Part shown: positions 1,411 through 54,557 of the stretch, one piece after another
How positions within the stretch are numbered: the first letter of the stretch is position 1
Layout: the number at the start of each line of letters is the position of its first letter
The notes under the pieces: generated by a model
Told to the model about the DNA's origin: nothing
Seen by the model: the letters and a program-made list of their open reading frames with translations, nothing else
Databases searched by the model: none
IMG/VR virus record: IMGVR_UViG_3300023184_000024
Span: 62,001-126,000 of that record
Reading direction: 5' to 3' (one strand)
DNA: 64,000 nucleotides
Program-made: the position numbers and the translations under genes

Positions 1411-2469
1411 ATGAAAAAATTAGTGATTATTCCCGGTGGCTTTCACCCGTTCCATGCAGGACACAAGGCTTTGTATGACAAAGCAGTTGAAGCATTTCCT
1501 TCAGCTGATGTTTATATTGCAGCCACTGATGATCGTAGTGAGCGACCGTTTCCTTTTGCTATCAAGAAAAAACTAGCACAACTGGCCGGTGTGCCACCAC
1601 ATAGATTTATACAAGTCAAGAGTCCGTTTAAACCCGACGAAATTACCAGCCACTATCCTGACAATGATACACAGTTAATATTTGTCAAGAGTCAAAAGAA
1701 TGCCAAAAATGGACCTGATCCTGAAGGACCATTCCCGGCCGAAGTAGATCCCAAAACCGGGCAATTGCCCTTAGTCACTCGCGGTGCTAGAAAAGGGCAA
1801 CCTGTGAGTGATTGGTTGCAGTACTACAAGCGCAATGGCCTTGCCCCAATGAGTCAACACGGTTATTTGAAGTACCTACCTGTGCATGAATTCAATGGCA
1901 TGACATCAGGCAGTGAAATTCGTGCCAAGTGGGCCAACTATGATGATGCTACCAAAGCACAGTTGGTTAACATCATGTACCCAACCACAGTTAATAATCC
2001 GAGACTCACAGACGTCACAGTCAAGCTCATGGACAACGGCATGGGCACCAACAACAAAAAACCAGCAGCCAAGCCAGTTGACGAAGATCAAGGAGCTGGT
2101 CAAGTGTTGGCCAAAAGCATAGCATTGGCTCCAGTGGGTCCAGTAGACACTGAAGTTGACGAAGCCACATTGGTCAACGATCCCGAAGAAGGAATTCAAA
2201 TTCGTCCCAACGGCGGCCTAGGTTCCTGGAATGAAGCCAGTCTTAAAAATAACCTGGTAAAACAATTGGTTGAAATAGTAGAAATGCTCAAGGTTGGTAA
2301 TTACCGTGGCGTTGAGCACTTGTTGTACAAGGGCGGTGCCATGCAGGCCAAAGTGCAGGCTTTGGCACGATTAGAAGACTTTAGTACCAAACAAGGTCGT
2401 CGTCCTATTGCTCAAGGCAAAGAAATAAATATCGGCGAAGATTACGTCGAAGAAGGTAGTTTAAAATGA
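1411..2469 (+). CDS. Cytidyltransferase-like (HIGH-motif) nucleotidyltransferase with acidic-linker C-terminal module
   Basis: IIPGGFHPFHAGH HIGH-type motif at N-terminus; SGSEIR (KMSKS-equivalent); PVDE/EVDE linkers before a separate tail domain. Confidence 0.8.
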   Translation: MKKLVIIPGGFHPFHAGHKALYDKAVEAFPSADVYIAATDDRSERPFPFAIKKKLAQLAGVPPHRFIQVKSPFKPDEITSHYPDNDTQLIFVKSQKNAKNGPDPEGPFPAEVDPKTGQLPLVTRGARKGQPVSDWLQYYKRNGLAPMSQHGYLKYLPVHEFNGMTSGSEIRAKWANYDDATKAQLVNIMYPTTVNNPRLTDVTVKLMDNGMGTNNKKPAAKPVDEDQGAGQVLAKSIALAPVGPVDTEVDEATLVNDPEEGIQIRPNGGLGSWNEASLKNNLVKQLVEIVEMLKVGNYRGVEHLLYKGGAMQAKVQALARLEDFSTKQGRRPIAQGKEINIGEDYVEEGSLK

Positions 2470-4094
2470 AAGCACGTGAGTTTATTACAGAAGCTGTTGA
2501 GGATAGAACCAGCTATCAAGTTGCCAAAATATTGGCCGACAAAGGCATCAAGTATGACTCTTCTCTTGAGTCCAAGTTAATAAGTGCTATCGGGGCAGTG
2601 ATGGTAAAAGAGTTGGGCATGAATCCAACCACAGTAAGAAACATTATCAGCTACGATGACGATTTCCTTGCTGACACTCTAAGCGAACTACAACACATGA
2701 ATCAAGGTGTGACAGAAGGCTCCAGAAACGCATATTTGAAACACAACAATTTAGTTGACATAGAAAAGCCACTGGCCGGACTAAAAAGTGAGTTTGAGAA
2801 ATTTTTACAAACGCATGACCCTGAAGAAAAACAAAAATATCAACAAGGTATAAAAAAACGAATTAAATCAGAACCAATGTCAGGACCAAAAGGCGTATTA
2901 CCAGAGCAAGGTGAAGGCAACTTTGCAGGTGATGCCCCGGTCAACATCGGCGGAGCAACAGTCAAGCGACTAGGAGTTGGCGACGCAGTAACATACTTTG
3001 GGCAACCGGCAAAGATCCTTGCACAATCAACGGATCGTAAACATTCTCGCATTACAATTACAAAGGGCATGGGCGGCGTTACTCAAAATGTGCTAACAAG
3101 TGATTTAAAACGAGTGGGGCAAGGTGTGGCGGAAGGCTCCTTAAACGAAGGGCAATATGAAATGATGATGCGTAATGGACAAGTGAAGAAGTTCATTGCC
3201 AAAGACGATGCTGATGCCAAGCGTATTGCCGCCGGCCACGGTGCTAAAAGCGTAATCAAGTTAAGAGGTGGTGTTCCTGCTGGTAAAATAGCAGAGCAAG
3301 GTGTGGCGGAAGGCTATGACCCTGTAGAATCAGATTACCAACAGTGGGAAGATATTCTAGTCAAGGACGGCTACAGGATGGCTGACCCTTCCGGTGCTTA
3401 CGCATTAAAACTAGTGGTAGGACATCAGGGTTCAGATTCTGATTGGGTATCTGCCATTAGAAATATTTTGGCCTATGTCAAACAGAATCGTGCTGTGCTT
3501 GGTAAAGCAGTAGCAGACAGAACTACTGTGAAAGATGCTATCATTGATATTAAAAACAAGTTCCCTCAACAGTATCAAGCGGCCCAACAACAGCAAGGTG
3601 TAGCAGAAGGTAAACCAGAAGTTGATTCACTTGTTACCGACACATCAAACATAATGCAAGGTCCAGAATTCAGTGATGCTGAACTAGCAATAAAGACGGT
3701 GCTAGGAGATAGAGCATTTAATGAACGCCGCAGTTATTACAGTTTCTTTATTAACCAACTGGTCGATATGTATGGTAAGCCTGAAGGATCAAAAACAGTA
3801 GATTCACTGGTCACCAACGCACTAGGCGTAATGCGTGGTCCAACAAGAAATGATGCTATAGCCGCATTAAAAACTGCGCTTGGAAATGAAGAATATAAGA
3901 GCCGTAGTACTTTTTATAAGTTATGGGTCAACCAAGCAGTTGACAAGTATAGTAAAAAAGGTGTAACTGAAAGTTCTGTGACCAAGAAGCCGCAGCCTTA
4001 CAACGAGCCAAACTGGGCTAAAAATTTGCCCAAAGATAAGTTGGATGCCATAGCTGGCCCACGCTACAAAAAAGATAAAAAACAAAAAAGCTAG
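2466..4094 (+). CDS. Modular putative internal head protein (CTS-like N-terminus, repeated QGVAEG linkers)
   Basis: Starts MKAREFITE; five QGV[AT]E-type linkers; tandem ~58-aa duplication near the C-terminus. Confidence 0.6.
   Translation: MKAREFITEAVEDRTSYQVAKILADKGIKYDSSLESKLISAIGAVMVKELGMNPTTVRNIISYDDDFLADTLSELQHMNQGVTEGSRNAYLKHNNLVDIEKPLAGLKSEFEKFLQTHDPEEKQKYQQGIKKRIKSEPMSGPKGVLPEQGEGNFAGDAPVNIGGATVKRLGVGDAVTYFGQPAKILAQSTDRKHSRITITKGMGGVTQNVLTSDLKRVGQGVAEGSLNEGQYEMMMRNGQVKKFIAKDDADAKRIAAGHGAKSVIKLRGGVPAGKIAEQGVAEGYDPVESDYQQWEDILVKDGYRMADPSGAYALKLVVGHQGSDSDWVSAIRNILAYVKQNRAVLGKAVADRTTVKDAIIDIKNKFPQQYQAAQQQQGVAEGKPEVDSLVTDTSNIMQGPEFSDAELAIKTVLGDRAFNERRSYYSFFINQLVDMYGKPEGSKTVDSLVTNALGVMRGPTRNDAIAALKTALGNEEYKSRSTFYKLWVNQAVDKYSKKGVTESSVTKKPQPYNEPNWAKNLPKDKLDAIAGPRYKKDKKQKS
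2703..3611 (+). repeat. Dispersed in-frame 18-bp repeat CAAGGTGTRRCRGAAGGY (QGVAEG)
   Basis: Copies at 2703-2720, 3120-3137, 3297-3314 (identical to 3120) and 3594-3611. Variants occur at 3957, in the 8297 ORF (QGVEE, RGVAEG) and in the 9792 ORF (QDLAEG). Confidence 0.85.
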
Positions 4095-5036: not shown

Positions 5037-8000
5037 ATGGACATCAACGAACTGGAAACGTACCGTTTATCGGACGCAATTAAATTTAACAGCAATCTTA
5101 ACCCCCGTTTGTGGGGTGAAGATGAACAGCTTAGACCTGAGGTGCGAGAGCACCTTTTGTCTATTGCTGATGATTTTCGAGAATCTCTTGGCGTCAACGA
5201 TCTCAACGTCAAAGACATTACCATCAGCGGAAGTAATGCCGCTTATACATATACCCCGCACAGCGACATAGACCTGCATCTTGTAGTAGACTTGGACAAT
5301 GTCTGCAACAACGAAGTCTACCGAGAGTTGTTTGATGCTAAAAAATATCAATACAACAACGAACACAACTACAAAATACATGGCTATGATGTTGAACTGT
5401 ATGTTCAAGACAGCAAACAACCACACCATAGTTCCGGCATTTACTCAATAGTCAACAACGATTGGATCAAAGTACCTAGCCGTAGAAAACCCACCATTGA
5501 TGATATCAGCGTCAAAGGCAAGTATGTGGATCTAGGCAACCGCATCGAAGCTGCCCTGGCCAGTGGGGATATTGAATTAATCAAAACCCTGTGGCAAAAA
5601 TTAAAGACCATGCGGCAAGCTGGATTGGATAAAACTGGAGAGTTTGGTCCTGAGAATCTAGCATTTAAATTGCTACGCAGAGCTGGTATAATTGAAAAAT
5701 TAAAAACTGCCATCACACAGGCCAAAGATCAAGAACTCAGCTTAACTGAACGTAAGAAAAAGAAAAAAAGAGTGCGCTACGGCTACGGTGGTCATTTTTA
5801 TCCTGGGTATTCATTCAATGATAACTCTGCCGACGGTGGCGAAGGCGGCGGTGAAAGTGTAATGGAAAACAAAGACGTCAAAGACATACTACAACCATTT
5901 ATTGACAGTTGCGTAGAATATCTTGGCATCGAAAACCGCCCAAAAATTATATTAAAACGTGATCCGGAGTGGACACGCAGAAACGGCACGTTTGGACGGT
6001 TTGATCATGACACACATTCAGTGACGTTGGCTGTAACCGGTCGGCACACACTGGACATTCTTCGCACGTTGGCACATGAACTCACTCATGCCAAGCAAGA
6101 TGAATTGGCAGCATTGCCTGTGGATGCAGGTCAAACAGGATCTCCCTACGAAGATGAAGCAAATGCCATGGCTGGTCGAATCATGCGACATTGGGTCGAC
6201 CAGCATCCTGAATTCTTCAAAGACGTACCAGTTGAAGAATCTGTTAAAAGTAAATTAGCGGCAGCCGGGGCGGCAGTGTGCATAGCTGGAACACCAGGAT
6301 GTGCTACCACCACTGGCGATGCTATCCGTGGTGTGCAGGCAGCAGGAACAGCGGCGCAGACCATCAAGCACATGGGCCGAGCCGGTGCCGAAGAAGAGGT
6401 AATGCAACGACTTAAAAATGAACTGCGTCGACATCGTGGGCAAAATGTGCCCGAAGAAGTCACTGACGAGGATTACGATCCCAACGGCAAGCCACCTGGT
6501 CCTGAGTTCAAGCCTACTATGCCAGCAGGCACAGTCAAAGTAGATGTTAGTGATGTTTACGATTGGTATAAGCTGGGACAACACATCAGTGATCTAGAAG
6601 GATTGGGCCAGCATGATTTTGGCAGTGGACCCCCTAGTACCATCATGGCATTTGGCAGTGAAAAAGAAGAACACAAATACATTGACGCACTAAAGAAAAC
6701 AGGACTGACAACAACTGATATTGATCCGGTTGATGTGAATCAACCCAAGGGTATGCCGCGCCAGAAAGTTGATCCTACCTATAACGTGGATGAAGATAAA
6801 CAAAGTATAGACGAAGCTCAGATTAGCAAAAACATTCAACCAATTCTTGTAAAAAAAGGCTATGCATTTTTGGGCAAAGGTCAGGACCAAGATGCCTATC
6901 TAGCACCCGACGGAACTGTTCTCAAAATATTTGGTTACGGTCCAGGCGGTAAGTTATCCCAAGGACAACAAAGTTTCAAAGACTTTGCCGATTACTGCAT
7001 GGCAAAGCCAAACAATCCATTTTTGCCACAGTTTGGCGGCTGGGAACCTTTTGACTTTGAAGGTAAACGATATCTGCAGATCAACTGTGAAAGAATGTTT
7101 GATCTTAGCAAGTCTGGGTTGATCCTGGTTGGTTCCAGACTAGGGCAATTGGCAAGTTTGATACAGTCCAATGGTGCAGACCGTGGAGTTAATAAATTCC
7201 TAAGACGCCACGGAGATAAAGAAACAGGAAAACTAATGTCATTGGTTGGTGGGCGGCAACAATTTCTGTTGTTGGCCAACACCATTGAGCAACTGGATAA
7301 GCTTGCTGACCGAAAGGGATACAGACTTGATTTGCATGGCGGTAACTTTATGCTTGGCAGTGATGGCGAGATAGTCATTAATGATCCATTTTTTACTGGT
7401 AATTGGCGATTTGATGAATCTATAAATGAATCATTGGACCAACCCTATAAAATACTTCGATGGGAAAAGGGTGACTACGGTGATGTAGACGCAATAGCAC
7501 GATTAGATGACGGAACTTTTCTAAGCATTATGTTCAACAAGGGATTTAGTCAAGATACAAAAGAGGAAGCATGGAGTGTTGAGTTTTATAGAAACAACAG
7601 TCAAGAAAAGACAGGTGAGGGTGATCAACAGCGTGTGTTTGCCACTGTGTTAAGTGCTGTTCAAACATTTGTTTCTGACAGGGTGCCTGGCGCCAAGGGA
7701 AAATACAAACCCAATAAAGTATACTTTTCGGCCTCAAAAGAAGTTAAACCAGATGAGGATCAAAGGAAAGCAATGACCAGGGCAAGACTGTATGACAGTT
7801 TGGTTCAGCGTTATGCACGAGCATTAGGCTTTAGAGCGTTCCGTGCTGACACCGGCAACAAAGTAATGTACGAATTGAGTAGAATAAAACCAATAGCGGA
7901 AGATATTGCAGATGAAAGTGTACTTGGATTTTTAACAAGTCCTAATACTCCTGGTGAAAAAAAATCTAAGATAAGTTCTGCAGAAATGCGAAAGTATTTT

Positions 8001-8300
8001 GAAAAAGAAAAATCCAAAGAGCCGGCAAAATATAATAACGATAACAAACAAAAGCCTCAATATGTGTATACTAGATCAAATGAAGAGAAACAAGAGGTAG
8101 TCGAGTCCACAGGCTATATTCCTGTTAATGATCAAGAAGCACGTGATCCAAGATACAGCATGGCTATCACACAAGATATCAAACCCGGGGAAGTTCAGCG
8201 TCAGGCAGCTAAAATGGGCTTTAAAACTGATGCTGCCGGTGTGCCACCGTTGTTGATGGCCAAACTACAAAATCAACTAAAAGAGATCAAAGCAAAATGA
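5037..8300 (+). CDS. Multidomain protein: Pol-beta-like nucleotidyltransferase + zincin metallopeptidase + protein-kinase-like domain + unknown modules
   Basis: GSNA-x7-SDIDLH (5229-5279); LAHELTH HExxH (6075-6089); GKGQ loop (6873), VLKIF, DLHGGN (7329-7346), INDP; domains separated by E-rich linkers. Confidence 0.8.
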   Translation: MDINELETYRLSDAIKFNSNLNPRLWGEDEQLRPEVREHLLSIADDFRESLGVNDLNVKDITISGSNAAYTYTPHSDIDLHLVVDLDNVCNNEVYRELFDAKKYQYNNEHNYKIHGYDVELYVQDSKQPHHSSGIYSIVNNDWIKVPSRRKPTIDDISVKGKYVDLGNRIEAALASGDIELIKTLWQKLKTMRQAGLDKTGEFGPENLAFKLLRRAGIIEKLKTAITQAKDQELSLTERKKKKKRVRYGYGGHFYPGYSFNDNSADGGEGGGESVMENKDVKDILQPFIDSCVEYLGIENRPKIILKRDPEWTRRNGTFGRFDHDTHSVTLAVTGRHTLDILRTLAHELTHAKQDELAALPVDAGQTGSPYEDEANAMAGRIMRHWVDQHPEFFKDVPVEESVKSKLAAAGAAVCIAGTPGCATTTGDAIRGVQAAGTAAQTIKHMGRAGAEEEVMQRLKNELRRHRGQNVPEEVTDEDYDPNGKPPGPEFKPTMPAGTVKVDVSDVYDWYKLGQHISDLEGLGQHDFGSGPPSTIMAFGSEKEEHKYIDALKKTGLTTTDIDPVDVNQPKGMPRQKVDPTYNVDEDKQSIDEAQISKNIQPILVKKGYAFLGKGQDQDAYLAPDGTVLKIFGYGPGGKLSQGQQSFKDFADYCMAKPNNPFLPQFGGWEPFDFEGKRYLQINCERMFDLSKSGLILVGSRLGQLASLIQSNGADRGVNKFLRRHGDKETGKLMSLVGGRQQFLLLANTIEQLDKLADRKGYRLDLHGGNFMLGSDGEIVINDPFFTGNWRFDESINESLDQPYKILRWEKGDYGDVDAIARLDDGTFLSIMFNKGFSQDTKEEAWSVEFYRNNSQEKTGEGDQQRVFATVLSAVQTFVSDRVPGAKGKYKPNKVYFSASKEVKPDEDQRKAMTRARLYDSLVQRYARALGFRAFRADTGNKVMYELSRIKPIAEDIADESVLGFLTSPNTPGEKKSKISSAEMRKYFEKEKSKEPAKYNNDNKQKPQYVYTRSNEEKQEVVESTGYIPVNDQEARDPRYSMAITQDIKPGEVQRQAAKMGFKTDAAGVPPLLMAKLQNQLKEIKAK

Positions 8301-9790
8301 AAATTAAAGATCTAATATTAAAAGAAACAACTTTGGGTGGATTTCCAGTCAAGGTATTGAACATCCAAGATCAAGGTGTTGAAGAAGCTGGCAATGCCAA
8401 TAGTGGACGTCGTGGGCCAATGTCACCGCCAGACAATGCTCCGGTTACACCCGGACGAGTAGAAAAAACTGCCACAGGTATAAAACATCATGCTGACCCA
8501 AGTCGGTATGGTGGTCACAGTCCCAAACCTGAAGATGATCGTTTATTGGGCACACAACAAAGATGGAGATTGGATCGTGCTGTTCGTGGTGTGGCCGAAG
8601 GCACAGAAAAACGCTGTCTGCAATGTGGTATGAAGAACTGTAAATGCCCCGGAGACAGTTGCAAGTGCAAACCCGTTGCAGGATGGATTCCTGGTAAAGG
8701 TTTCAAGAAAGCCATAGAAGAAGCAATCAAGCTCAATGCACCACAGAAGTCATGGTCCAAGCAAGACATGCAGGATTACCTGACTCGCATTAAAACAGGT
8801 ACAAAAACCAAACAAGATAGATTCAAGCCTATTATTCACGGCAGCAATGTCAAAGCAATCACAAAAGACGATGGTACAGAAGAATGGGACCTGGAAGATC
8901 TAAAGCGTCAAATCACCACACCACCTAGAGCAATCCTTGGATCAAATGCCAAGATGAGCAAGAGTAAAAAAGAAGGTGCCATCACATACGACTTGACACT
9001 ACCAGCACTAAGCGGTATTGTTGTTGATGAAGACACTGGAGAGTTTGTAGAAATCACCACATGCCCAGGTGCCGGCGAATGTCAACTGTTCTGTTATGCT
9101 AGAAAAGGCGGCTATGTCATGTTCCCTGCCGCATCAATGAGTGCCGCACAAGCATTGAACTTCTTGGTCAATCACCCTGATGAATACATGGCAATGTTTG
9201 ACAGCGAAATCAAAAAAACAAAAGCACTGGCAGACAAAAATGGTATCAAGTTGTTGGTGCGTATTCATGATGCTGGCGACTTTTTCTCTAAAGAATACTG
9301 GGACCTAAGCAAGAAAGTGCAACTTAACAATCCAGATGTACGTTTTTACTTTTACAGCAAAATGGGAGAGCCAGTAACTGATCCAAATACGCCGTCTAAT
9401 ACATTGCCCAACTTCAGCGATGGTGGTGCCAAGAGTCGTGAAGTTAAGAAAGTTGAACTTTACAGAAATGCTGGCAAGAACTTAAAAGGTGCACCAACTA
9501 TTCCCAAAGACATGTTCCGCGAGTTGTTTGTTACTGATGCCAAAGGCAAATACGTCAAGGATGAACAAGGTCGCACACAGGTTAAAAGCCCAGAAGCATG
9601 GGAAAACTTTAAACAGAAGTTATCTACAAAATACAACATTGACCCTGGGTCAATTATCACATACGACCAAATGAATCGTATTCCCGAAGGACCCAAACCC
9701 AAATGGAACGTAGTTGTGTTCCCTGCAGGTCATGGTGACTTGGGTGCAACCCGACTTGATGTACAAAATCAATTTTTAATGTTCCACTGA
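8297..9790 (+). CDS. Gp88-like (radical-SAM-related) domain protein with N-terminal modules
   Basis: GSNAKMSKS, TCPGAGECQLFCYARKG, RIHDAGDF and FYFYSK motifs; Cys-rich CLQCGMKNCKC module; GVEE/GVAE/AIEE linkers. Confidence 0.65.
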   Translation: MKIKDLILKETTLGGFPVKVLNIQDQGVEEAGNANSGRRGPMSPPDNAPVTPGRVEKTATGIKHHADPSRYGGHSPKPEDDRLLGTQQRWRLDRAVRGVAEGTEKRCLQCGMKNCKCPGDSCKCKPVAGWIPGKGFKKAIEEAIKLNAPQKSWSKQDMQDYLTRIKTGTKTKQDRFKPIIHGSNVKAITKDDGTEEWDLEDLKRQITTPPRAILGSNAKMSKSKKEGAITYDLTLPALSGIVVDEDTGEFVEITTCPGAGECQLFCYARKGGYVMFPAASMSAAQALNFLVNHPDEYMAMFDSEIKKTKALADKNGIKLLVRIHDAGDFFSKEYWDLSKKVQLNNPDVRFYFYSKMGEPVTDPNTPSNTLPNFSDGGAKSREVKKVELYRNAGKNLKGAPTIPKDMFRELFVTDAKGKYVKDEQGRTQVKSPEAWENFKQKLSTKYNIDPGSIITYDQMNRIPEGPKPKWNVVVFPAGHGDLGATRLDVQNQFLMFH

Positions 9791-9791
9791 A

Positions 9792-10853
9792 ATGCGATCA
9801 CAAGAATTCATACGTGAGTACAAAGAAAAATTCAACCAGGCTGTGATGCAGCCGGGGTTCAAGTTCAGCCAGGAAATCAACGGTGTTGTTTATAAAGTAA
9901 TTAATAAAATAGGCATGCCCGAAATGCTGGCACTAGACAAACAAGGTCAAGTAATCGGCGCCGCAACATTTTGGAAACACCCTACTCAAACCGGATTAGA
10001 AAGCCTGAGCACACACGTAGACCAAGCATGGCAAGGCAAGGGCATTGCCGCAAACATGTATGCTGTGATGCGCATGCTGGGAGTAAACATATCGCCATCG
10101 TCTAATAGAACTAACATGGGCAAGGCCATGTGGGCCAAATGGAGCCGACAAGGTGATGCTAAACATCTAAAGAATTTAAATCCACGAACCAAAGAGCAAG
10201 ATCTAGCAGAAGGCCTGTCACATCCAGTTATCTGTGTTGATGTACAGCCAGAATACAACGGAGGACCATGGCCGCCTGCCAATCCAAAGTTTGTTCAAAT
10301 AATGAATTTTGTACAAAAACAAACTGGCCCTGTGCTGTTCTTTGTCAATGCCGAAGATCAAGGCTTGAGTGGAGATTCCGTTCAACAAATACAACAATTC
10401 TGGGACGAAACCTTGGGCACAGAAGGTGAAGAAGGTGAGGACGAGAATGGTGATTACTATTACAACGAGCCGGAGAGCCCGATTGACTGGCGCCGCTTTG
10501 AAATAGTAGACAAGGGCTACGGATACTTGCGTTCATGGATGGATCACGGAATTGAACCAAGTACCATCGTTGCAACCATACGTGAAATGTACGCACAACA
10601 AGTCTCAGACACTAGAGACCTAGAGTTCCCTGCCTTTAATCGTCGTACTACTACACAAAGTTTAATTCAAGGTGCCATAGAAGAAATGCAAGATGATCCA
10701 ATGACTGTGGGCTGGGCCAGTGTTGGTCAACTAAAGCGTTTTAACGGTGCCTACTTGGTTGGTGGTGGCAGAGAAGAATGCCTGCGTGAAGTAGAATTAT
10801 TAATGAATGCGTTTAATATTAAATATAAACGTATAGATAGCTTGGTGTATTAA
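9792..10853 (+). CDS. GNAT acetyltransferase domain fused to a cysteine-hydrolase-like domain; CTS-like N-terminus
   Basis: MRSQEFIRE; VDQAWQGKGIAANMY (acetyl-CoA motif A); second domain ICVDVQP...LVGGGREECL resembles the isochorismatase D/C motifs. Confidence 0.6.
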   Translation: MRSQEFIREYKEKFNQAVMQPGFKFSQEINGVVYKVINKIGMPEMLALDKQGQVIGAATFWKHPTQTGLESLSTHVDQAWQGKGIAANMYAVMRMLGVNISPSSNRTNMGKAMWAKWSRQGDAKHLKNLNPRTKEQDLAEGLSHPVICVDVQPEYNGGPWPPANPKFVQIMNFVQKQTGPVLFFVNAEDQGLSGDSVQQIQQFWDETLGTEGEEGEDENGDYYYNEPESPIDWRRFEIVDKGYGYLRSWMDHGIEPSTIVATIREMYAQQVSDTRDLEFPAFNRRTTTQSLIQGAIEEMQDDPMTVGWASVGQLKRFNGAYLVGGGREECLREVELLMNAFNIKYKRIDSLVY

Positions 10854-11339
10854 ATGAGAGCACAAGAGTTTATCACCGAAGGCAAGTTAAGTGTAGATGT
10901 GCCCAACGAAGCGTGGTTACAAGACAAGATTGACTATGCCAAAAGCAAAGGTCGTAACAGTTACGGTGTTCCATATATGGGTAGTACTACTGCTTCTGTT
11001 CAAGGAACTCCACCTAGAGTGCGTGTAATGAGATTAGCATCATTGCCGGGTATGCGCCATGAACAAACCAATGTGCGTCAAGATGACCTAAAGTGGTTGA
11101 TGGACTACATGGAACGCACAGGCAAGTTGCCACCCATGGGCAGTAACCCCGACCAAGAATACTTGCCCTACATCATGGTGGCATACAACGGTGAAGCATG
11201 GGTCAACGAAGGCAATCATCGTATCATGGCCGCTTATAGATTAAACTGGCAGGACATGCCCATTGAAATACGCTACTTTGATGGCGGCGAAAGAATTGCA
11301 ACAGGGCCAATGGCACCAGGCAAGATTGGACTAGCATGA
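10854..11339 (+). CDS. ParB/Srx N-terminal-like domain protein; CTS-like N-terminus
   Basis: MRAQEFITE; VNEGNHRIMAA matches the ParB GxxR motif. Confidence 0.65.
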   Translation: MRAQEFITEGKLSVDVPNEAWLQDKIDYAKSKGRNSYGVPYMGSTTASVQGTPPRVRVMRLASLPGMRHEQTNVRQDDLKWLMDYMERTGKLPPMGSNPDQEYLPYIMVAYNGEAWVNEGNHRIMAAYRLNWQDMPIEIRYFDGGERIATGPMAPGKIGLA

Positions 11340-11914
11340 GAGCCCAAGAGTTTGTTACTGAAACAATAAATCCAGATATTCTCAACAAGAGATTCCGGCA
11401 CAAACAAGTAATTGGTGATTACACTTACACAGCGTCAGTTGAGATGTTTATAGGTGAGCCGTTGTTGAACATCAAGGTTTATAATGGTGACACCGAAATA
11501 GGGCATGCCATGTTTGAAGTATTTCACTGGGAAGACCAACCATCTAAAAGCCACATAGAAAGCGGTGGCACCGAAGTTGATCCAAAATACAGAAACAAAG
11601 GTGTTGCTTCTACAATGTATGCCTATGCAAAAATGTTGGGCAATGATATTAGAGCCAGTTCTAATAGAACACCTCAAGGTAAGGCAATGTGGGCAGCCTG
11701 GGAAAAGTCGGGCGATGCGCAACACATAACTAGACCAGTTGAAGAAAACTTTGCAGATGGCAAAAAGCCTGGACGCAAAGGACTAGCCAAACGCTCAGGT
11801 GTTGACTGTAAACAAAGCGTGACCAAACTGCGTAACATTGCTGCCAACAGTTCTGGCGAACGACAAAGAATGGCACACTGGTGCGCCAACATGAAATCAG
11901 GCAAGAAAAAATGA
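11336..11914 (+). CDS. GNAT acetyltransferase domain plus basic C-terminal module; CTS-like N-terminus
   Basis: MRAQEFVTE; VDPKYRNKGVASTMY; PVEE linker, then NFADGKKPGRKG...HWCANMK module. Confidence 0.7.
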   Translation: MRAQEFVTETINPDILNKRFRHKQVIGDYTYTASVEMFIGEPLLNIKVYNGDTEIGHAMFEVFHWEDQPSKSHIESGGTEVDPKYRNKGVASTMYAYAKMLGNDIRASSNRTPQGKAMWAAWEKSGDAQHITRPVEENFADGKKPGRKGLAKRSGVDCKQSVTKLRNIAANSSGERQRMAHWCANMKSGKKK

Positions 11915-12108
11915 AAGCACAAGAGTTTATAACCAGGCCCAAACTCAAAGTTTATGCGGTAAAGATAAAACTACCACAGGGCGGATATAATAACATTGTT
12001 GACACAACTGTGATGGCAAAAAACCCTGAAATGGCTCGTCGTATTTTGCGTACCCAATATAATAATGCCAACATAATTGTGGGCCAGCCCAAAGAAATCA
12101 AACAATAA
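11911..12108 (+). CDS. Small hypothetical protein with CTS-like N-terminus
   Basis: True start is ATG 11911 (ATGA overlap with the previous stop): MKAQEFITRP. Confidence 0.7.
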   Translation: MKAQEFITRPKLKVYAVKIKLPQGGYNNIVDTTVMAKNPEMARRILRTQYNNANIIVGQPKEIKQ

Positions 12109-12126: not shown

Positions 12127-12432
12127 GTGGATAATATATTTGTACAAGCTTGTTTTGACCTGCACTGTGAGTGGAAGGAAACTCCCCCATCGTATCGTGT
12201 TTTTGTAAACAACGAATTGTTTACAGAGCGAACGTATGTATGGACTGACTACTACTTAACAGAAATGTTGCAAATTGAAGCTCCTGCAGGACATTATCAA
12301 ATAACAATAGTTCCAATGGGGCCCGAAGCCGATACATTGATTGTCAACAATTGGGACATAGAATACGGAACTGCTCGATGGCTTACAAAAGAGTCTGAGT
12401 CATTTAAAAACACCTTGGAAATACACCCATGA
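12127..12432 (+). CDS. Hypothetical protein
   Basis: ORF in the operon, preceded by TAAATA at 12117. Confidence 0.55.
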   Translation: MDNIFVQACFDLHCEWKETPPSYRVFVNNELFTERTYVWTDYYLTEMLQIEAPAGHYQITIVPMGPEADTLIVNNWDIEYGTARWLTKESESFKNTLEIHP

Positions 12433-12599
12433 GATGGCGAGAAATAATGGAAAATATCAGCTCAGGGACCACTGGGGCCGGGTCAATTTCTGTGGTCAGC
12501 AATCCCATTGGGAAAGTAATTACCAGAACAGAGAATAAAAAAATAGGTAAATATTCTAATAGTCCAAACCCAACACCGTACAGTAAGAAAAAGGAATAA
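12429..12599 (+). CDS. 56-aa hypothetical protein (below ORF-track cutoff), CTS-like start
   Basis: MRWREIMENISSGTTGAGSISVVSNPIG...KKKE; fills the gap exactly, with ATGA overlap. Confidence 0.65.
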   Translation: MRWREIMENISSGTTGAGSISVVSNPIGKVITRTENKKIGKYSNSPNPTPYSKKKE

Positions 12600-15880: not shown

Positions 15881-18538
15881 ATGAGTTACGTCGACGCACT
15901 TTTTGATCGTGAACACGATCGCATTCATGTTGTAGAAAGAAAAAATGGCATACGGGAATATCGAGAATATCCTGCCAGCTATATTTTTTACTATGACGAC
16001 CCACGTGGTAAATTTCGTAGTATTTTTGGCGGGTCTGTTTCAAGATTCAGCACACGCAACAACAAAGAGTTTCGCAAAGAAATACGTATTCAGAGCAGCC
16101 GCCAAATCTATGAAAGTGATATTAATCCTGTTTTTAGATGCTTTGAAGAAAACTACAAAGGCCAAGATGCTCCAAAATTGCACACAGCATTTTTTGACAT
16201 TGAAGTAGACTTTGATCCAGAGCGAGGCTTTAGTCCACCCAGTGACCCGTTCAACCCAATTACTGCAATTTCAGTTTACCTAGACTGGCTAGACCAACTG
16301 GTCACACTAGTGGTGCCACCTCGACACATGAGTCAAGAGACTGCTCAAGAAATTGCCAAAGAATTTGAAAATACCATTATCTTTGCCAACGAAGGTGAAC
16401 TGTTAAACACTTTTTTGGATCTCATTGATGATGCCGACGTACTAAGTGGATGGAACAGTGAAGGTTTTGATATTCCGTACACTGTGCAACGTATAACTCG
16501 AGTTCTTAGCAAAGACGATACTCGTAGATTTTGTTTATGGGGGCAATTACCTAAACAACGCACATTTGAAAGATTCGGTGCAGAAAATATCACATTTGAC
16601 TTGATTGGTCGTGTTCACATGGATTACATGCAGTTATATCGCAAATACACCTATGAAGAACGTCACAGTTATTCATTGGATGCAATCGGCGAGCACGAAC
16701 TAAACGAACGTAAGACTGCGTTCGAAGGCACATTGGATCAGTTGTACAATCAAAACTTTAAAACATTTATCGAGTACAACAGACAAGATACAATGTTACT
16801 GGCCAGATTAGATAAGAAATTACGTTTCTTAGATCTGGCCAACGAATTGGCACATGCCAACACTGTATTGCTACAAACCACCATGGGTGCAGTAGCAGTA
16901 ACCGAGCAAGCGATTATAAATGAAGCGCACGAAAGAGGCGTCGTAGTTCCTAACCGTAAAGAAAGATTCACAGATGAAGATACACAAGCCGCAGGTGCCT
17001 ATGTTGCTTATCCCAAAAAAGGCATCCACGAATGGGTCGGTGCAATTGACATTAACTCGCTCTACCCCTCAGCGATCCGCGCTCTTAACATGGCGCCCGA
17101 AACAATTATTGGACAACTCCGTCCGATAATGACCAATCGGATTATCAAAGAAAAAATTGATAAAGGTGCCAGTTTTGCGGCAGCCTGGGAAGGCCTGTTT
17201 GCCAGCTTGGAATATACCGCTGTGATGGAACAACAACGTGGCACAGAAATTACCATAGATTGGCAAAATGGTGAAGAGAGTGTTCACAGTGCCGCTGAAA
17301 TTTGGCAAATAGTTTTTAACAGTAATAACCCTTGGATTCTCAGTGCAAATGGCACCATCTTCAACTATGACCAGGAAGGCATCATTCCGGGCCTGCTTGC
17401 ACGATGGTACAGAGAACGTAAAGAACTACAAGTCAAGTTAAAAGAGTCAACAACCAAACAAGATCAAGAATTTTGGGACAAGAGACAGCTGGTCAAGAAG
17501 ATTAACTTGAACAGTTTGTATGGTGCTATTCTTAATCCCGGTTGTAGGTTCTTTGACAAACGCATTGGACAGAGTACTACGCTAACTGGTCGTAGTATTG
17601 CCAAGCACATGGACAGTTTTGTCAACGAGTGCATCACTGGCAAGTACGATCACACTGGTGACTCTATTATCTACGGGGACACTGACTCTGTTTATTTTAG
17701 TGCATGGCCGGTCCTTAAACAAGAAGTTGCCGAAGGACGAATGGAATGGAGCAAAGAAACTTGCATTGCTTTGTACGATTCCATTGCTGATCAAGTCAAT
17801 CAAAGTTTTCCTGGATTTATGGAACAAGCATTTCATTGTCCGAGAGATATGGGATCCATCATCAAAGGCGGTCGAGAGTTGATTGCTGATCGTAGCCTGT
17901 TTATTACTAAAAAACGATATGCTGTCAACATCTTTGACAAAGAGGGCAAACGAAAAGACGTTGACGGAAAAACTGGCTCTATCAAAGCAATGGGGCTTGA
18001 TTTAAAACGTTCCGACACTCCTAAAATTATTCAAGACTTCTTGTGGGAAATTCTAAATAATGTACTTGCTGGTTCTACTCGAGTAGACATCATTGAACGT
18101 ATACGAAAATTCAAGTACGAGTTCATGGAACGTCCTGGTTGGGAAAAAGGTAGTCCCAAGCGTGTTAACAATTTGACCAAGTACGGCAAAGAAGAAGAAC
18201 GACTTGGAAGAGCAAACATGCCAGGGCATGTGAGAGCGGCAATTAACTGGAATAATATGCGCAGGATGAATGGAGATAATTATTCAATGCAGATAGTAGA
18301 TGGTATGAAAACTATTGTGTGTAAACTTAAATCAAATGCGCTTGGTTGGACCAGCATTGGTTATCCCACAGATGAGATACATCTTCCACAATGGTTCAAA
18401 GAATTGCCATTTGACGATGCAGAAATGGAAGCCACTGTGGTTGATCAAAAGATCAGCAACCTACTTGGTGTTCTTGACTGGGACCTGAGCAGTGCAACTA
18501 ATACAGAAAACACTTTCCAAAATTTATTTGAATTCTAA
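15881..18538 (+). CDS. Family B DNA polymerase with 3'-5' exonuclease
   Basis: ExoI FFDIEV, ExoII GWNSEGFDIPY, ExoIII YNRQD; pol motifs DINSLYPS, KINLNSLYG, YGDTDS, KKRYA. Confidence 0.97.
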   Translation: MSYVDALFDREHDRIHVVERKNGIREYREYPASYIFYYDDPRGKFRSIFGGSVSRFSTRNNKEFRKEIRIQSSRQIYESDINPVFRCFEENYKGQDAPKLHTAFFDIEVDFDPERGFSPPSDPFNPITAISVYLDWLDQLVTLVVPPRHMSQETAQEIAKEFENTIIFANEGELLNTFLDLIDDADVLSGWNSEGFDIPYTVQRITRVLSKDDTRRFCLWGQLPKQRTFERFGAENITFDLIGRVHMDYMQLYRKYTYEERHSYSLDAIGEHELNERKTAFEGTLDQLYNQNFKTFIEYNRQDTMLLARLDKKLRFLDLANELAHANTVLLQTTMGAVAVTEQAIINEAHERGVVVPNRKERFTDEDTQAAGAYVAYPKKGIHEWVGAIDINSLYPSAIRALNMAPETIIGQLRPIMTNRIIKEKIDKGASFAAAWEGLFASLEYTAVMEQQRGTEITIDWQNGEESVHSAAEIWQIVFNSNNPWILSANGTIFNYDQEGIIPGLLARWYRERKELQVKLKESTTKQDQEFWDKRQLVKKINLNSLYGAILNPGCRFFDKRIGQSTTLTGRSIAKHMDSFVNECITGKYDHTGDSIIYGDTDSVYFSAWPVLKQEVAEGRMEWSKETCIALYDSIADQVNQSFPGFMEQAFHCPRDMGSIIKGGRELIADRSLFITKKRYAVNIFDKEGKRKDVDGKTGSIKAMGLDLKRSDTPKIIQDFLWEILNNVLAGSTRVDIIERIRKFKYEFMERPGWEKGSPKRVNNLTKYGKEEERLGRANMPGHVRAAINWNNMRRMNGDNYSMQIVDGMKTIVCKLKSNALGWTSIGYPTDEIHLPQWFKELPFDDAEMEATVVDQKISNLLGVLDWDLSSATNTENTFQNLFEF

Positions 18539-54011: not shown

Positions 54012-54154
54012 TGAAAGTCATTTACAACGGTTTGCTGGCAGGTTGGTACATTGTGCGTGGCGCACATCAAACACCCATTTCGGGCAGATTTGACAGTAAA
54101 GAATTGGCACTGGCCCATTTGCGTAGACGCAATCCTTTTCACACAGGAATTTAA
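54011..54154 (+). CDS. 47-aa hypothetical protein (below ORF-track cutoff)
   Basis: TAATG overlap; MKVIYNGLLAGWYIVRGAHQTPISGRF. Confidence 0.6.
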   Translation: MKVIYNGLLAGWYIVRGAHQTPISGRFDSKELALAHLRRRNPFHTGI

Positions 54155-54155
54155 A

Positions 54156-54557
54156 ATGGAAGTCTATATTGAAGGTCGTACAAAGGCCTGTAAATTTGTA
54201 GAGTCATTGATTCCCTCCATGCTGGAACAATTGAAGCTGACCAAAAGCCGAAAACTCTTGCACATCATTCTTGACCCCGATATCGACGAGCTTGGCAGTA
54301 CCATTCCATTGGATGGCATAGACACTTACTTGGTGGTTCTCAAGCCCACCCGAGACTTGTTTGCCTTGGGTGCTACCTTGGCGCACGAGCTCACCCATGT
54401 GTCACAATTTGCCAAAGGCACTCTACAGGTCACACCCAAAGGAAAGAAATGGCGTGGCAAGTTCTACGGCCGCAACGTCCCGTATCTAAATCAACCTTGG
54501 GAAATACAAGCATTTTCCAAGCAAGAAATTGTAATGCGCAGGGCCATAGAGCTTTGA
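54156..54557 (+). CDS. Zincin-like HExxH protein
   Basis: TLAHELTHVSQ; PWEIQA; AGGA RBS supports ATG 54156. Confidence 0.75.
   Translation: MEVYIEGRTKACKFVESLIPSMLEQLKLTKSRKLLHIILDPDIDELGSTIPLDGIDTYLVVLKPTRDLFALGATLAHELTHVSQFAKGTLQVTPKGKKWRGKFYGRNVPYLNQPWEIQAFSKQEIVMRRAIEL

Follow-up and report, generated by a model that had tools for sequence, protein, structure and literature searches.

A shuffled multi-enzyme gene as a candidate polyprotein of internal head proteins in a freshwater T4-related jumbo phage

Introduction

Proteins that travel in the head of a phage act before the phage genes are read, which makes them prime candidates for a part in counter-defence and in the take-over of the host. 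To our knowledge, such head-delivered proteins are poorly known outside T4, P1, N4 and the phiKZ group. In T4, the capsid targeting sequence (CTS) reads MKTYQEFIAE (PMC8442874); its residues 4 and 7 direct targeting and its residues 8 and 10 processing (PMC9026906), and Alt is cut at ITE-6 and LTE-619 (PMC5694885). The polyvalent proteins were described in 2017 (Iyer, Burroughs, Anand, de Souza and Aravind, 2017; PMC5512222), and in T7, the early targets of the kinase gp0.7 are proteins of host transcription and translation (T7 record note; PMC5512222). Could features of all these systems meet in a single gene? This article deals with such a candidate, which occupies positions 5037..8300 (+ strand) of a 64,000-nucleotide stretch of virus DNA. 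This stretch, hereafter the window, corresponds to bases 62001-126000 of the 352,754-bp record IMGVR_UViG_3300023184_000024, which has direct terminal repeats. The phage comes from lake and freshwater metagenomes and was found again across several independent studies. With moderate confidence, and from comparisons of sequences and predicted structures, we read the gene as a polyprotein of internal head proteins of a T4-related jumbo phage, which would be cut by a gp21-like protease and delivered with the DNA.

The Gene and its Family

The open reading frame (ORF) runs for 1087 codons and closes with a TGA stop. Its product, P0001, had been described in an original prediction, made before any database search, as a chain of nucleotidyltransferase (NTase), zincin peptidase and protein kinase domains joined by linkers that end in Glu, and the elements behind that description are all in place: G65-S66...D77-I-D79 at nucleotides (nt) 5229-5273, H347-E-L-T-H351 at nt 6075-6089, the kinase motifs between residues ~594 and 798 (GKGQ loop, VLK with K630, D765-L-H-G-G-N770 and I-N-D783-P), and the seven linkers SVME-277, PVEE-401, VTDE-477, SIDE-593, SINE-798, PIAE-955 and VVE-1023/S, where a slash, here and below, marks the predicted cut. 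Further [VIL]xE sites in P0001 are INE-5, LTE-238, VPE-473 and VDE-586. The three enzyme assignments are borne out by the comparisons given below, and predicted models back separate kinase, zincin and NTase folds.

A metagenomic source, and a modular mosaic resembling mis-assembled strain mixtures, might suggest an assembly chimera or a fused pseudo-ORF with no biological reality. However, contigs without a single difference tile the ORF in the probable source run, and two independent runs from another study contain exact pieces of it; for these two reasons the ORF is taken as real and an assembly artefact was rejected. Near-identical full-length proteins also lie on other contigs (e.g. P0002 and P0003), and the frame is open for its whole length with conserved catalytic residues, all of which makes a chimera extremely improbable.

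The family is large. An exhaustive search yielded 6488 clusters (50% identity) with E<=1e-3, of which 1804 reach E<=1e-30; matches nearly always begin at residue 1 in query and target alike. A word-indexed search returned homologues of 650-1850 residues on contigs of up to ~350 kb. Steps in query coverage divide P0001 into the blocks named NT, ZN, TM, D4, KIN, D6, SP and CT. Among the 119 homologues listed, nearly all cover residues 1-400, ~95 cover residues 400-580, 6-7 the kinase block at 600-790, 55 residues 800-950, and ~110 the last ~60 residues.

A census of modules in 380 collected proteins, 243 of them long, describes how these blocks are combined. NT-ZN always comes first and the remaining blocks follow in any order, giving at least 156 distinct architectures among the 243 long proteins; only 21 homologues are collinear with P0001. 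Relatives carry extra cargo, namely amidoligase_2, GP88, GNAT, a zeta-toxin/AAA_33-like kinase, cytidine deaminase, and LysM plus GH19, which is of the type expected for delivered effectors.

Megablast of the gene against deposited phages gave no match. With tblastn, parts of it matched single modules only: the NTase in cyanophages, Maribacter phages and Lak phages, the zincin in Synechococcus phages B3, B23 and S-SRM01, and D6 in KVP40-like vibriophages; the kinase was not found in the deposited phage genomes searched in this way. An NCBIfam scan gave no family for the polyprotein. In PDB-sequence searches with the whole protein and with NT, ZN and KIN profiles, the best match was the NTase 2rff, at a weak E of 0.19. 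No paper describing such a concatenated arrangement was found in the literature searched.

Enzymatic Modules

NT (residues 6-238, window 5052..5750) is a nucleotidyltransferase of the Pol-beta fold with a C-terminal helical domain, and ends at LTE-238. It matches phrog_36119 (E 8e-43) and Pfam NTP_transf_2, the latter with 22.0 bits on the excised domain (cut-off 21) and 19.2 bits on the whole protein. The Pol-beta signature is there, that is a G-S, then DxD, plus a third carboxylate, E120, on strand 117-125 of the model, and G65, S66, D77, D79 and E120 are invariant in 70 homologues. The model has a predicted local distance difference test (pLDDT) score of mostly 70-93 and a VIA Z of 6.2 with NTase 2rff. 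Its Foldseek and AFDB matches are uniform but weak (E 3e-3 to 0.2), being CdnE, CdnC, CdnD, AAD(9)/ANT(9), LinB, ANT(4') and OAS1. T4-like cyanophages, Maribacter phages and Lak megaphages have stand-alone homologues of ~240 residues; in cyanophage S-CRM01 and Maribacter phage Molly these stop where the module does. NT is preceded by the pentapeptide MDINE (window 5037..5051), a possible short propeptide or targeting end in which E5 is conserved in at least 90% of the 70 homologues and the following L6 is invariant. It is followed, between LTE-238 and VME-277, by a basic, Gly-rich disordered spacer (residues 239-277, window 5751..5867).

The second enzyme, ZN (residues 278-401, window 5868..6239), is a minimal gluzincin metallopeptidase, which follows the NTase directly in virtually all members of the family. 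The HELTH motif at nt 6075-6089 is joined by a third ligand, E372, at nt 6150-6152, and H347, E348, H351 and E372 are invariant in 70 sequences. In the model, with a pLDDT of ~90 or more, one helix, three strands and two helices match the definition of the zincin fold (PMC5512222). Foldseek finds the minigluzincins selecase, abylysin and jannalysin, as well as Wss1 and IrrE; among Swiss-Prot models the matches are ATP23, MJ0123 and SprT-like proteins. VIA Z values for residues 272-400 are 8.5 with ERAP1 and Wss1, 7.6 with lethal factor and 6.7 with ArdC. A Pfam scan of residues 270-410 with E up to 10 gave no sequence match to MPTase-PolyVal or any other curated peptidase family, only chance matches, DUF6055 and DUF6782 (putative metallopeptidase, E 0.07). 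Elsewhere in the window, a small ORF at 54051-54557 has a zincin-like AHELTH motif and weak similarity to ZN (E 0.0013), and starts without a leader of the type described below.

KIN (residues 594-798, window 6816..7430) has a reduced protein-kinase fold of the T7 gp0.7 type, with K630 at nt 6924-6926, D765-N770 at nt 7329-7346 and D783 at nt 7383-7385. It matches phrog_15752, the T7 0.7 kinase family (E 3e-6), and hhalign aligns it with T7 gp0.7 itself over the N-lobe only (probability 79%, E 1.6e-5). G615 (G22 of the segment), K630, D765, H767, N770 and D783 are invariant in 70 sequences. The AlphaFold2 (AF2) model reaches a pLDDT of 93.9 and has 220 PDB matches at E<=1e-3; all 50 listed are kinase-like, with template modelling (TM) scores kept to 0.34-0.48 by the reduced C-lobe. 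Among named viral proteins the best matches, in BFVD, are protein kinases of T7-like phages (E 1e-8 to 1e-6, TM scores 0.53-0.68). The last N-lobe strand bears an invariant Q681, which fits a feature with which the reduced kinases of polyvalent proteins were described (PMC5512222).

The Other Modules

TM (residues 402-477, window 6240..6467) was delimited by alignment as an Ala/Gly-rich hydrophobic segment with two conserved Cys, and in homologues it starts after [VIL]xE/G. After the predicted cut it would begin with G-[WIL]-[KR]-[DE]-[KR], followed by an Ala-rich stretch, a Cys and IAGTPG-Cys-ATT. This arrangement, in which each Cys is at least 90% conserved, resembles a lipoprotein signal peptide with its lipobox, and would be exposed only by that cleavage.

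D4 (residues 478-586), together with the heptapeptide DKQSIDE (587-593; window 6468..6815 for both), is found in 155 of the 380 collected proteins and has no Pfam or Atlas match. D6 (residues 799-955, window 7431..7901) is a DUF6934-like viral domain: it matches phrog_16075 and phrog_6387, its DUF6934 match is weak, and its nearest Atlas clusters are viral, some of them DUF6934. SP (residues 956-1023, window 7902..8105) is a rare spacer module seen in only 3 of the 380 proteins, with no family match. The last block, CT (residues 1024-1087 and stop codon, window 8106..8300), bears an 'SGYIP...DPRY' motif and has no Pfam or Atlas match; it is near-universal, occurring in 232 of the 380 proteins, and it is internal in 171 of the 243 long ones. 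Contigs 90-99% similar to the kinase and D6 region (window 6792-7903) occur in the freshwater metatranscriptome run X20. They could be related-phage transcripts or carried-over DNA, and are not taken as evidence for transcription of the gene at 5037..8300.

Linkers and Head Protease

The genome that carries the polyprotein gene also encodes a T4-like head module, made of an acidic protein, a Peptidase_S77 protease encoded at genome 224562-225188 (E 4.5e-27), a scaffold-like protein whose gene lies between those of the protease and the capsid protein, and the capsid protein Gp23 (E 1.4e-99). Peptidase_S77 was found in all five near-complete relatives that have the polyprotein. Both the capsid protein and the protease of this phage carry Glu-ended sites: YLKE/N stands ~40 residues before the conserved GVQPM block of the former, and the latter starts with MALYLRE/N, just as T4 gp21 has LIE-9 near its start.

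It is the position of the linkers in P0001 that is telling. An overall enrichment of [ILV]xE was considered and rejected, since 13 such tripeptides are found and ~14 are expected from composition; position alone matters. Seven of the 13 lie within 3 residues of one of the 8 module borders, where 0.67 would be expected (binomial P ~1e-6). These borders were drawn partly with the motif known, and the stronger evidence is therefore family-wide conservation together with the leader alignments described below. In unique contexts from homologues, D6 starts have P1 Glu in 45 of 48 and V, I, L or M at P3 in 47 of 48; TM starts have P1 Glu in 37 of 41 and a hydrophobic P3 in 34 of 41; and [VIL]xE precedes CT in 154 of 187 unique flanks. 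No conservation is seen at module starts further upstream than P3. In the models, residues 1-6 and 243-278 are disordered (pLDDT under 50) and so form flexible borders.

This comparative evidence supports the view that the linkers are head-protease sites. The original prediction had proposed maturation by the head protease, and the idea gains support from the Peptidase_S77 and Gp23 genes of the same genome, from the motif at module starts across a shuffled family, and from CTS-like leaders in register with the linkers.

Capsid-Targeting Leaders

The leader M[RK]AxEF[IV]xE opens seven genes of the genome, five of which are beside the polyprotein gene (window 2466, 9792, 10854 and 11336, and genome 54208 just upstream of the window). 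The leader, in the form MRAxEF[ILV]xE, nearly matches the T4 sequence MKTYQEFIAE. Outside the window, two small genes adjacent to each other also carry it, at genome 263121-263492 (MRAREFIAE) and 263489-263878 (MRAREFITE). Of 80 related loci, 61 have leader ORFs; 118 of the 119 such ORFs share the strand of the polyprotein, and their rate is ~19 times that at internal Met.

The neighbouring leader genes are modules that other phages have fused into their polyproteins, and the register between leader and linker is exact: the residue after the leader Glu aligns with the residue after the linker Glu in the fused forms. Thus MRAQEFITE/GKLSVDVPNE corresponds to ..EEDIDE/GTLSVDVPNE, and MRAQEFVTE/TINPDILNKRF to ..KSVAE/TINTDILNKRF in P0008. 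Stand-alone kinases of ~215 residues start MKAHEFITE/A where P0001 reads ..KQSIDE/A; 73 of 120 stand-alone kinase homologues fit the strict leader pattern, and most others are variants or truncated ORFs. A stand-alone zincin of the T4-like cyanophage B3 starts MNYKQFLRE/S, and in Vibrio phage nt-1, ORF252 has ..NLTE/ directly before its D6 module. The fused linkers retain P3 and P1 only, the processing residues, as expected if targeting is supplied once per precursor.

Could the zincin itself do the cutting? P0001 would then be a self-processing polyvalent protein, its embedded zincin cleaving the linkers in the head or after injection, with the head protease uninvolved. This is exactly the role proposed for zincins, the hub domain of polyvalent proteins, by Iyer et al. 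(2017; PMC5512222). The invariant catalytic residues, the constant place of the zincin behind the NTase and its ArdC and lethal-factor-like fold matches all agree with it. However, T4-type prohead proteases are known to be specific for [VIL]xE, a motif also seen in the capsid protein and the protease of this phage; stand-alone modules bear leaders with no zincin in cis; and the cyanophage B3 zincin has a CTS-like leader itself, which marks the zincin as cargo. In addition, gluzincins usually prefer a hydrophobic P1' over a P1 Glu. Self-processing is thus unlikely.

Cassette Gain and Loss

Comparison of close relatives shows that modules come and go at these borders. P0001 and P0003 are 65% identical over residues 1-479 and 91% over 580-1036, and D4 is an exact insertion in P0001 relative to P0003, between ..TDE/ and DKQSIDE/. 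A co-occurring strain, represented by contigs from two lake samples, diverges at nt 7902, one nucleotide past the codon of Glu-955; from there its contigs continue with 208 other bases and rejoin at nt 10224, just after LAE/GLSH of the gene at 9792. The cassette set of this strain is therefore different, and the breakpoints fall at module borders. In P0011, P0014, P0020 and other relatives, the GP88 gene is fused in frame behind CT with its start Met and leader (MKIAHILKE) kept, the fused part being residues 811-1358 in P0011 and 98% identical in P0014. Judging from such sequences, gene fusion and fission through gain or loss of a stop codon seem common in the polyprotein/GP88 region.

These observations also bear on a second alternative, that of a multi-enzyme protein which stays intact in the infected cell and is never packaged, [VIL]xE being merely a flexible linker or domain-cap sequence. 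The overall motif count is not above chance, the neighbours (radical SAM, DNA polymerase B) are not known as structural, and N4 vRNAP-type polyvalent proteins are known to stay uncut, all of which would suit such a protein. Yet it leaves unexplained why unrelated modules have P3 and P1 in common at their first residues, why T4-CTS-like leaders of stand-alone copies are in exact register, and why modules are freely shuffled with breakpoints at the sites. An uncut, unpackaged protein is accordingly quite improbable.

A Model for Packaging and Delivery

We infer packaging, head-protease cleavage, ejection and host targets as follows. The precursor would enter the prohead core late in infection, targeting being probably provided by the constant NTase-zincin unit with its Alt-like or CTS-like N-terminus. 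The gp21-type prohead protease would then cut after the Glu of [VIL]-x-Glu at each module border and free ~10 pieces, namely the nucleotidyltransferase (27 kDa), the zinc peptidase (14 kDa), a hydrophobic peptide with Cys, the Ser/Thr-type kinase of the T7 gp0.7 kind (23 kDa), and the DUF6934-like and other small modules. These pieces would remain in the head, leave with the DNA at the next infection and act on host proteins or nucleotides ahead of phage gene expression. Cargo modules would be swapped as cassettes through recombination at the linkers, being either fused, where a P3/P1 site suffices, or kept as separate small genes, each with its own 9-residue leader MRAxEF[ILV]xE.

Several points weigh against this model. 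P0001 starts MDINE/L, which has M-x-x-x-E-[LF] in common with the leader, and as the full MRAxEF leader is absent, its targeting signal is a conjecture drawn from sequence. Fold matches of NT are weak (Foldseek E 3e-3 or worse), and tblastn of parts found no counterpart of the polyprotein in the deposited phage genomes searched. D4 starts have P1 Glu in 72 of 96 contexts and a weak P3, which is usually Ala or Thr. In principle, [VIL]xE might be conserved at module starts as a part of each fold, and the embedded zincin, apparently active, could do the processing instead. For the T4 late-promoter motif TATAAATA there is no enrichment, with 2 found for 2.7 expected. Finally, a distance of ~157 kb separates the polyprotein gene from the head genes, and the genes around it are of mixed function; the T4 internal protein and alt genes are scattered too.

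A bolder version of the model may be put forward tentatively, as an idea with a little less than an even chance of being right: piggy-back packaging, in which the constant NTase-zincin carrier targets an interchangeable train of effectors. Cassettes would need to keep only a hydrophobic P3 and a P1 Glu, at which the T4-type head protease would free them; they would pass from the train to free-standing genes and back through gain or loss of the 9-residue leader; and residues 402-477 would expose a lipoprotein-signal-like N-terminus after cleavage. Such a system, if true, would be the phage counterpart of polymorphic toxin loci.

Neighboring Genes

The genes described here, like the polyprotein gene, are all on the + strand where a strand is given. 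At 2466..4094 (+), a gene of 542 amino acids has the leader MKAREFITE/ and five internal QGV[AT]E/GVTE sites, namely NQGVTE/G, GQGVAE/G, EQGVAE/G, QQGVAE/G and KKGVTE/S. Part of its product matches the interior of polyprotein P0018 with 71% identity, and from its sequence it appears to be a second polyprotein, made of small modules with a repeated linker.

Downstream of the polyprotein gene and overlapping its stop by ATGA, the gene at 8297..9790 (+) encodes 497 amino acids with a GP88 domain (Pfam E 1.4e-25), a leader-like variant, MKIKDLILKE, and GVEE/A and IEE/A sites. The 353-amino-acid gene at 9792..10853 (+) follows with the leader MRSQEFIRE/ and a GNAT-like module, then LAE/G and a second domain; its product is 49% identical to GNAT modules within polyprotein P0008. 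The next gene, of 161 amino acids (10854..11339, +; leader MRAQEFITE/), is 84% identical to a module that is internal or C-terminal in P0257 and P0050, its mature start aligning with the residue after ..IDE/ or ..LDE/ in the fused forms. The last, of 192 amino acids (11336..11914, +; leader MRAQEFVTE/), is GNAT-like with a weak Acetyltransf_1 match and is 74% identical to P0008 residues 775-915. An NCBIfam scan of five neighbors gave as sole match a weak N-acetyltransferase, far below cut-off, at window 11336-11914.

Beyond these genes, short ORFs at 11881-12108 (MRQHEIRQEKMKAQEFITR, with Arg replacing Glu) and 12429-12599 (MRWREIME/N) have degenerate leader-like starts, and by their sequence could be variants of cassettes or decayed ones. 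Two genes that lie shortly before the window, at genome 54208-55248 and 53032-53730, have modules in common with the polyproteins of other phages. The array is flanked by a gene for a radical SAM/SPASM enzyme (414-1394) and one for a family B DNA polymerase (15881-18538); it is therefore among mixed-function genes, outside the head cluster.

Significance

What the locus suggests is a delivery of whole enzyme sets by T4-related jumbo phages of lakes. It provides a rule for finding delivered proteins in metagenomes, either the leader MRAxEF[ILV]xE or [VIL]xE at a module start, and predicts exact mature N-termini that mass spectrometry can check. Its natural variation separates targeting from processing residues in the capsid targeting sequence. 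It also offers a stock of compact enzymes, such as a 205-residue kinase and a 124-residue zincin, along with cleavable linkers that may suit T4-based protein packaging.

Comparison with Known Systems

The original prediction knew of no characterized protein with this combination. This holds in the experimental sense; the class itself had already been described computationally, with its zincin hub, NTases and kinases (PMC5512222). On our reading, P0001 would be the T4 internal proteins in polyprotein form, and it represents the polyvalent proteins of 2017 in a form specific to this lineage.

With T4 IPI-III and Alt, the system has in common a prohead protease and a capsid protein of the T4 type, cleavage (here predicted) after a Glu that has Leu, Ile or Val at P3, a near-identical leader of 9-10 residues (here on neighbouring genes and stand-alone modules) and a hypervariable set of small cargo. 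Alt is especially close, as an enzyme cargo with a short N-terminal site and a second internal one: the INE-5 of P0001 resembles the ITE-6 at which Alt is processed, and may be cut likewise. The differences are just as clear. T4 cargo comes from separate genes, each product being cut once or twice, whereas up to ~10 modules are joined here in one 123-kDa precursor, which is headed by the constant NTase-zincin unit and has linkers that keep the processing residues only. The enzymes carried as cargo (kinase, NTase, zincin, amidoligase and others) also differ from the T4 ones.

As in the definition of polyvalent proteins (PMC5512222), NTase, zincin and kinase are found in one ORF, with more enzymes in relatives. 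Both have unrelated enzymatic domains in one polypeptide with the zincin as common hub, a cargo of Pol-beta NTases, GNATs and reduced kinases without the usual C-lobe, and predicted delivery with the DNA and proteolytic release. Here, however, the NTase-zincin N-terminus is fixed, the linkers match a T4-type head protease and do not imply zincin autoprocessing, the hosts of the gene are freshwater T4-related jumbo phages, and Pfam gives no MPTase-PolyVal match. The NTases described in 2017 are minimal, belong to conjugative elements of firmicutes and are fused to ArdC-N, whereas NT is a 233-residue, two-domain, ANT/CD-NTase-like protein.

In phiKZ, 201phi2-1 and SPN3US, many head-internal proteins are also cut after Glu by a gp21-related protease, sometimes at multiple sites, and ejected into the host. 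These proteases, however, prefer a small P3 (S/A/G-x-E), and what they process are long propeptides, not strings of independent enzymes, in another lineage with another capsid protein. T7 gp0.7, finally, is the nearest named relative of KIN in sequence and fold. It is an early gene product, made after DNA entry and equipped with a C-terminal host shut-off domain, whereas KIN is a 205-residue core that would be made in advance and delivered.

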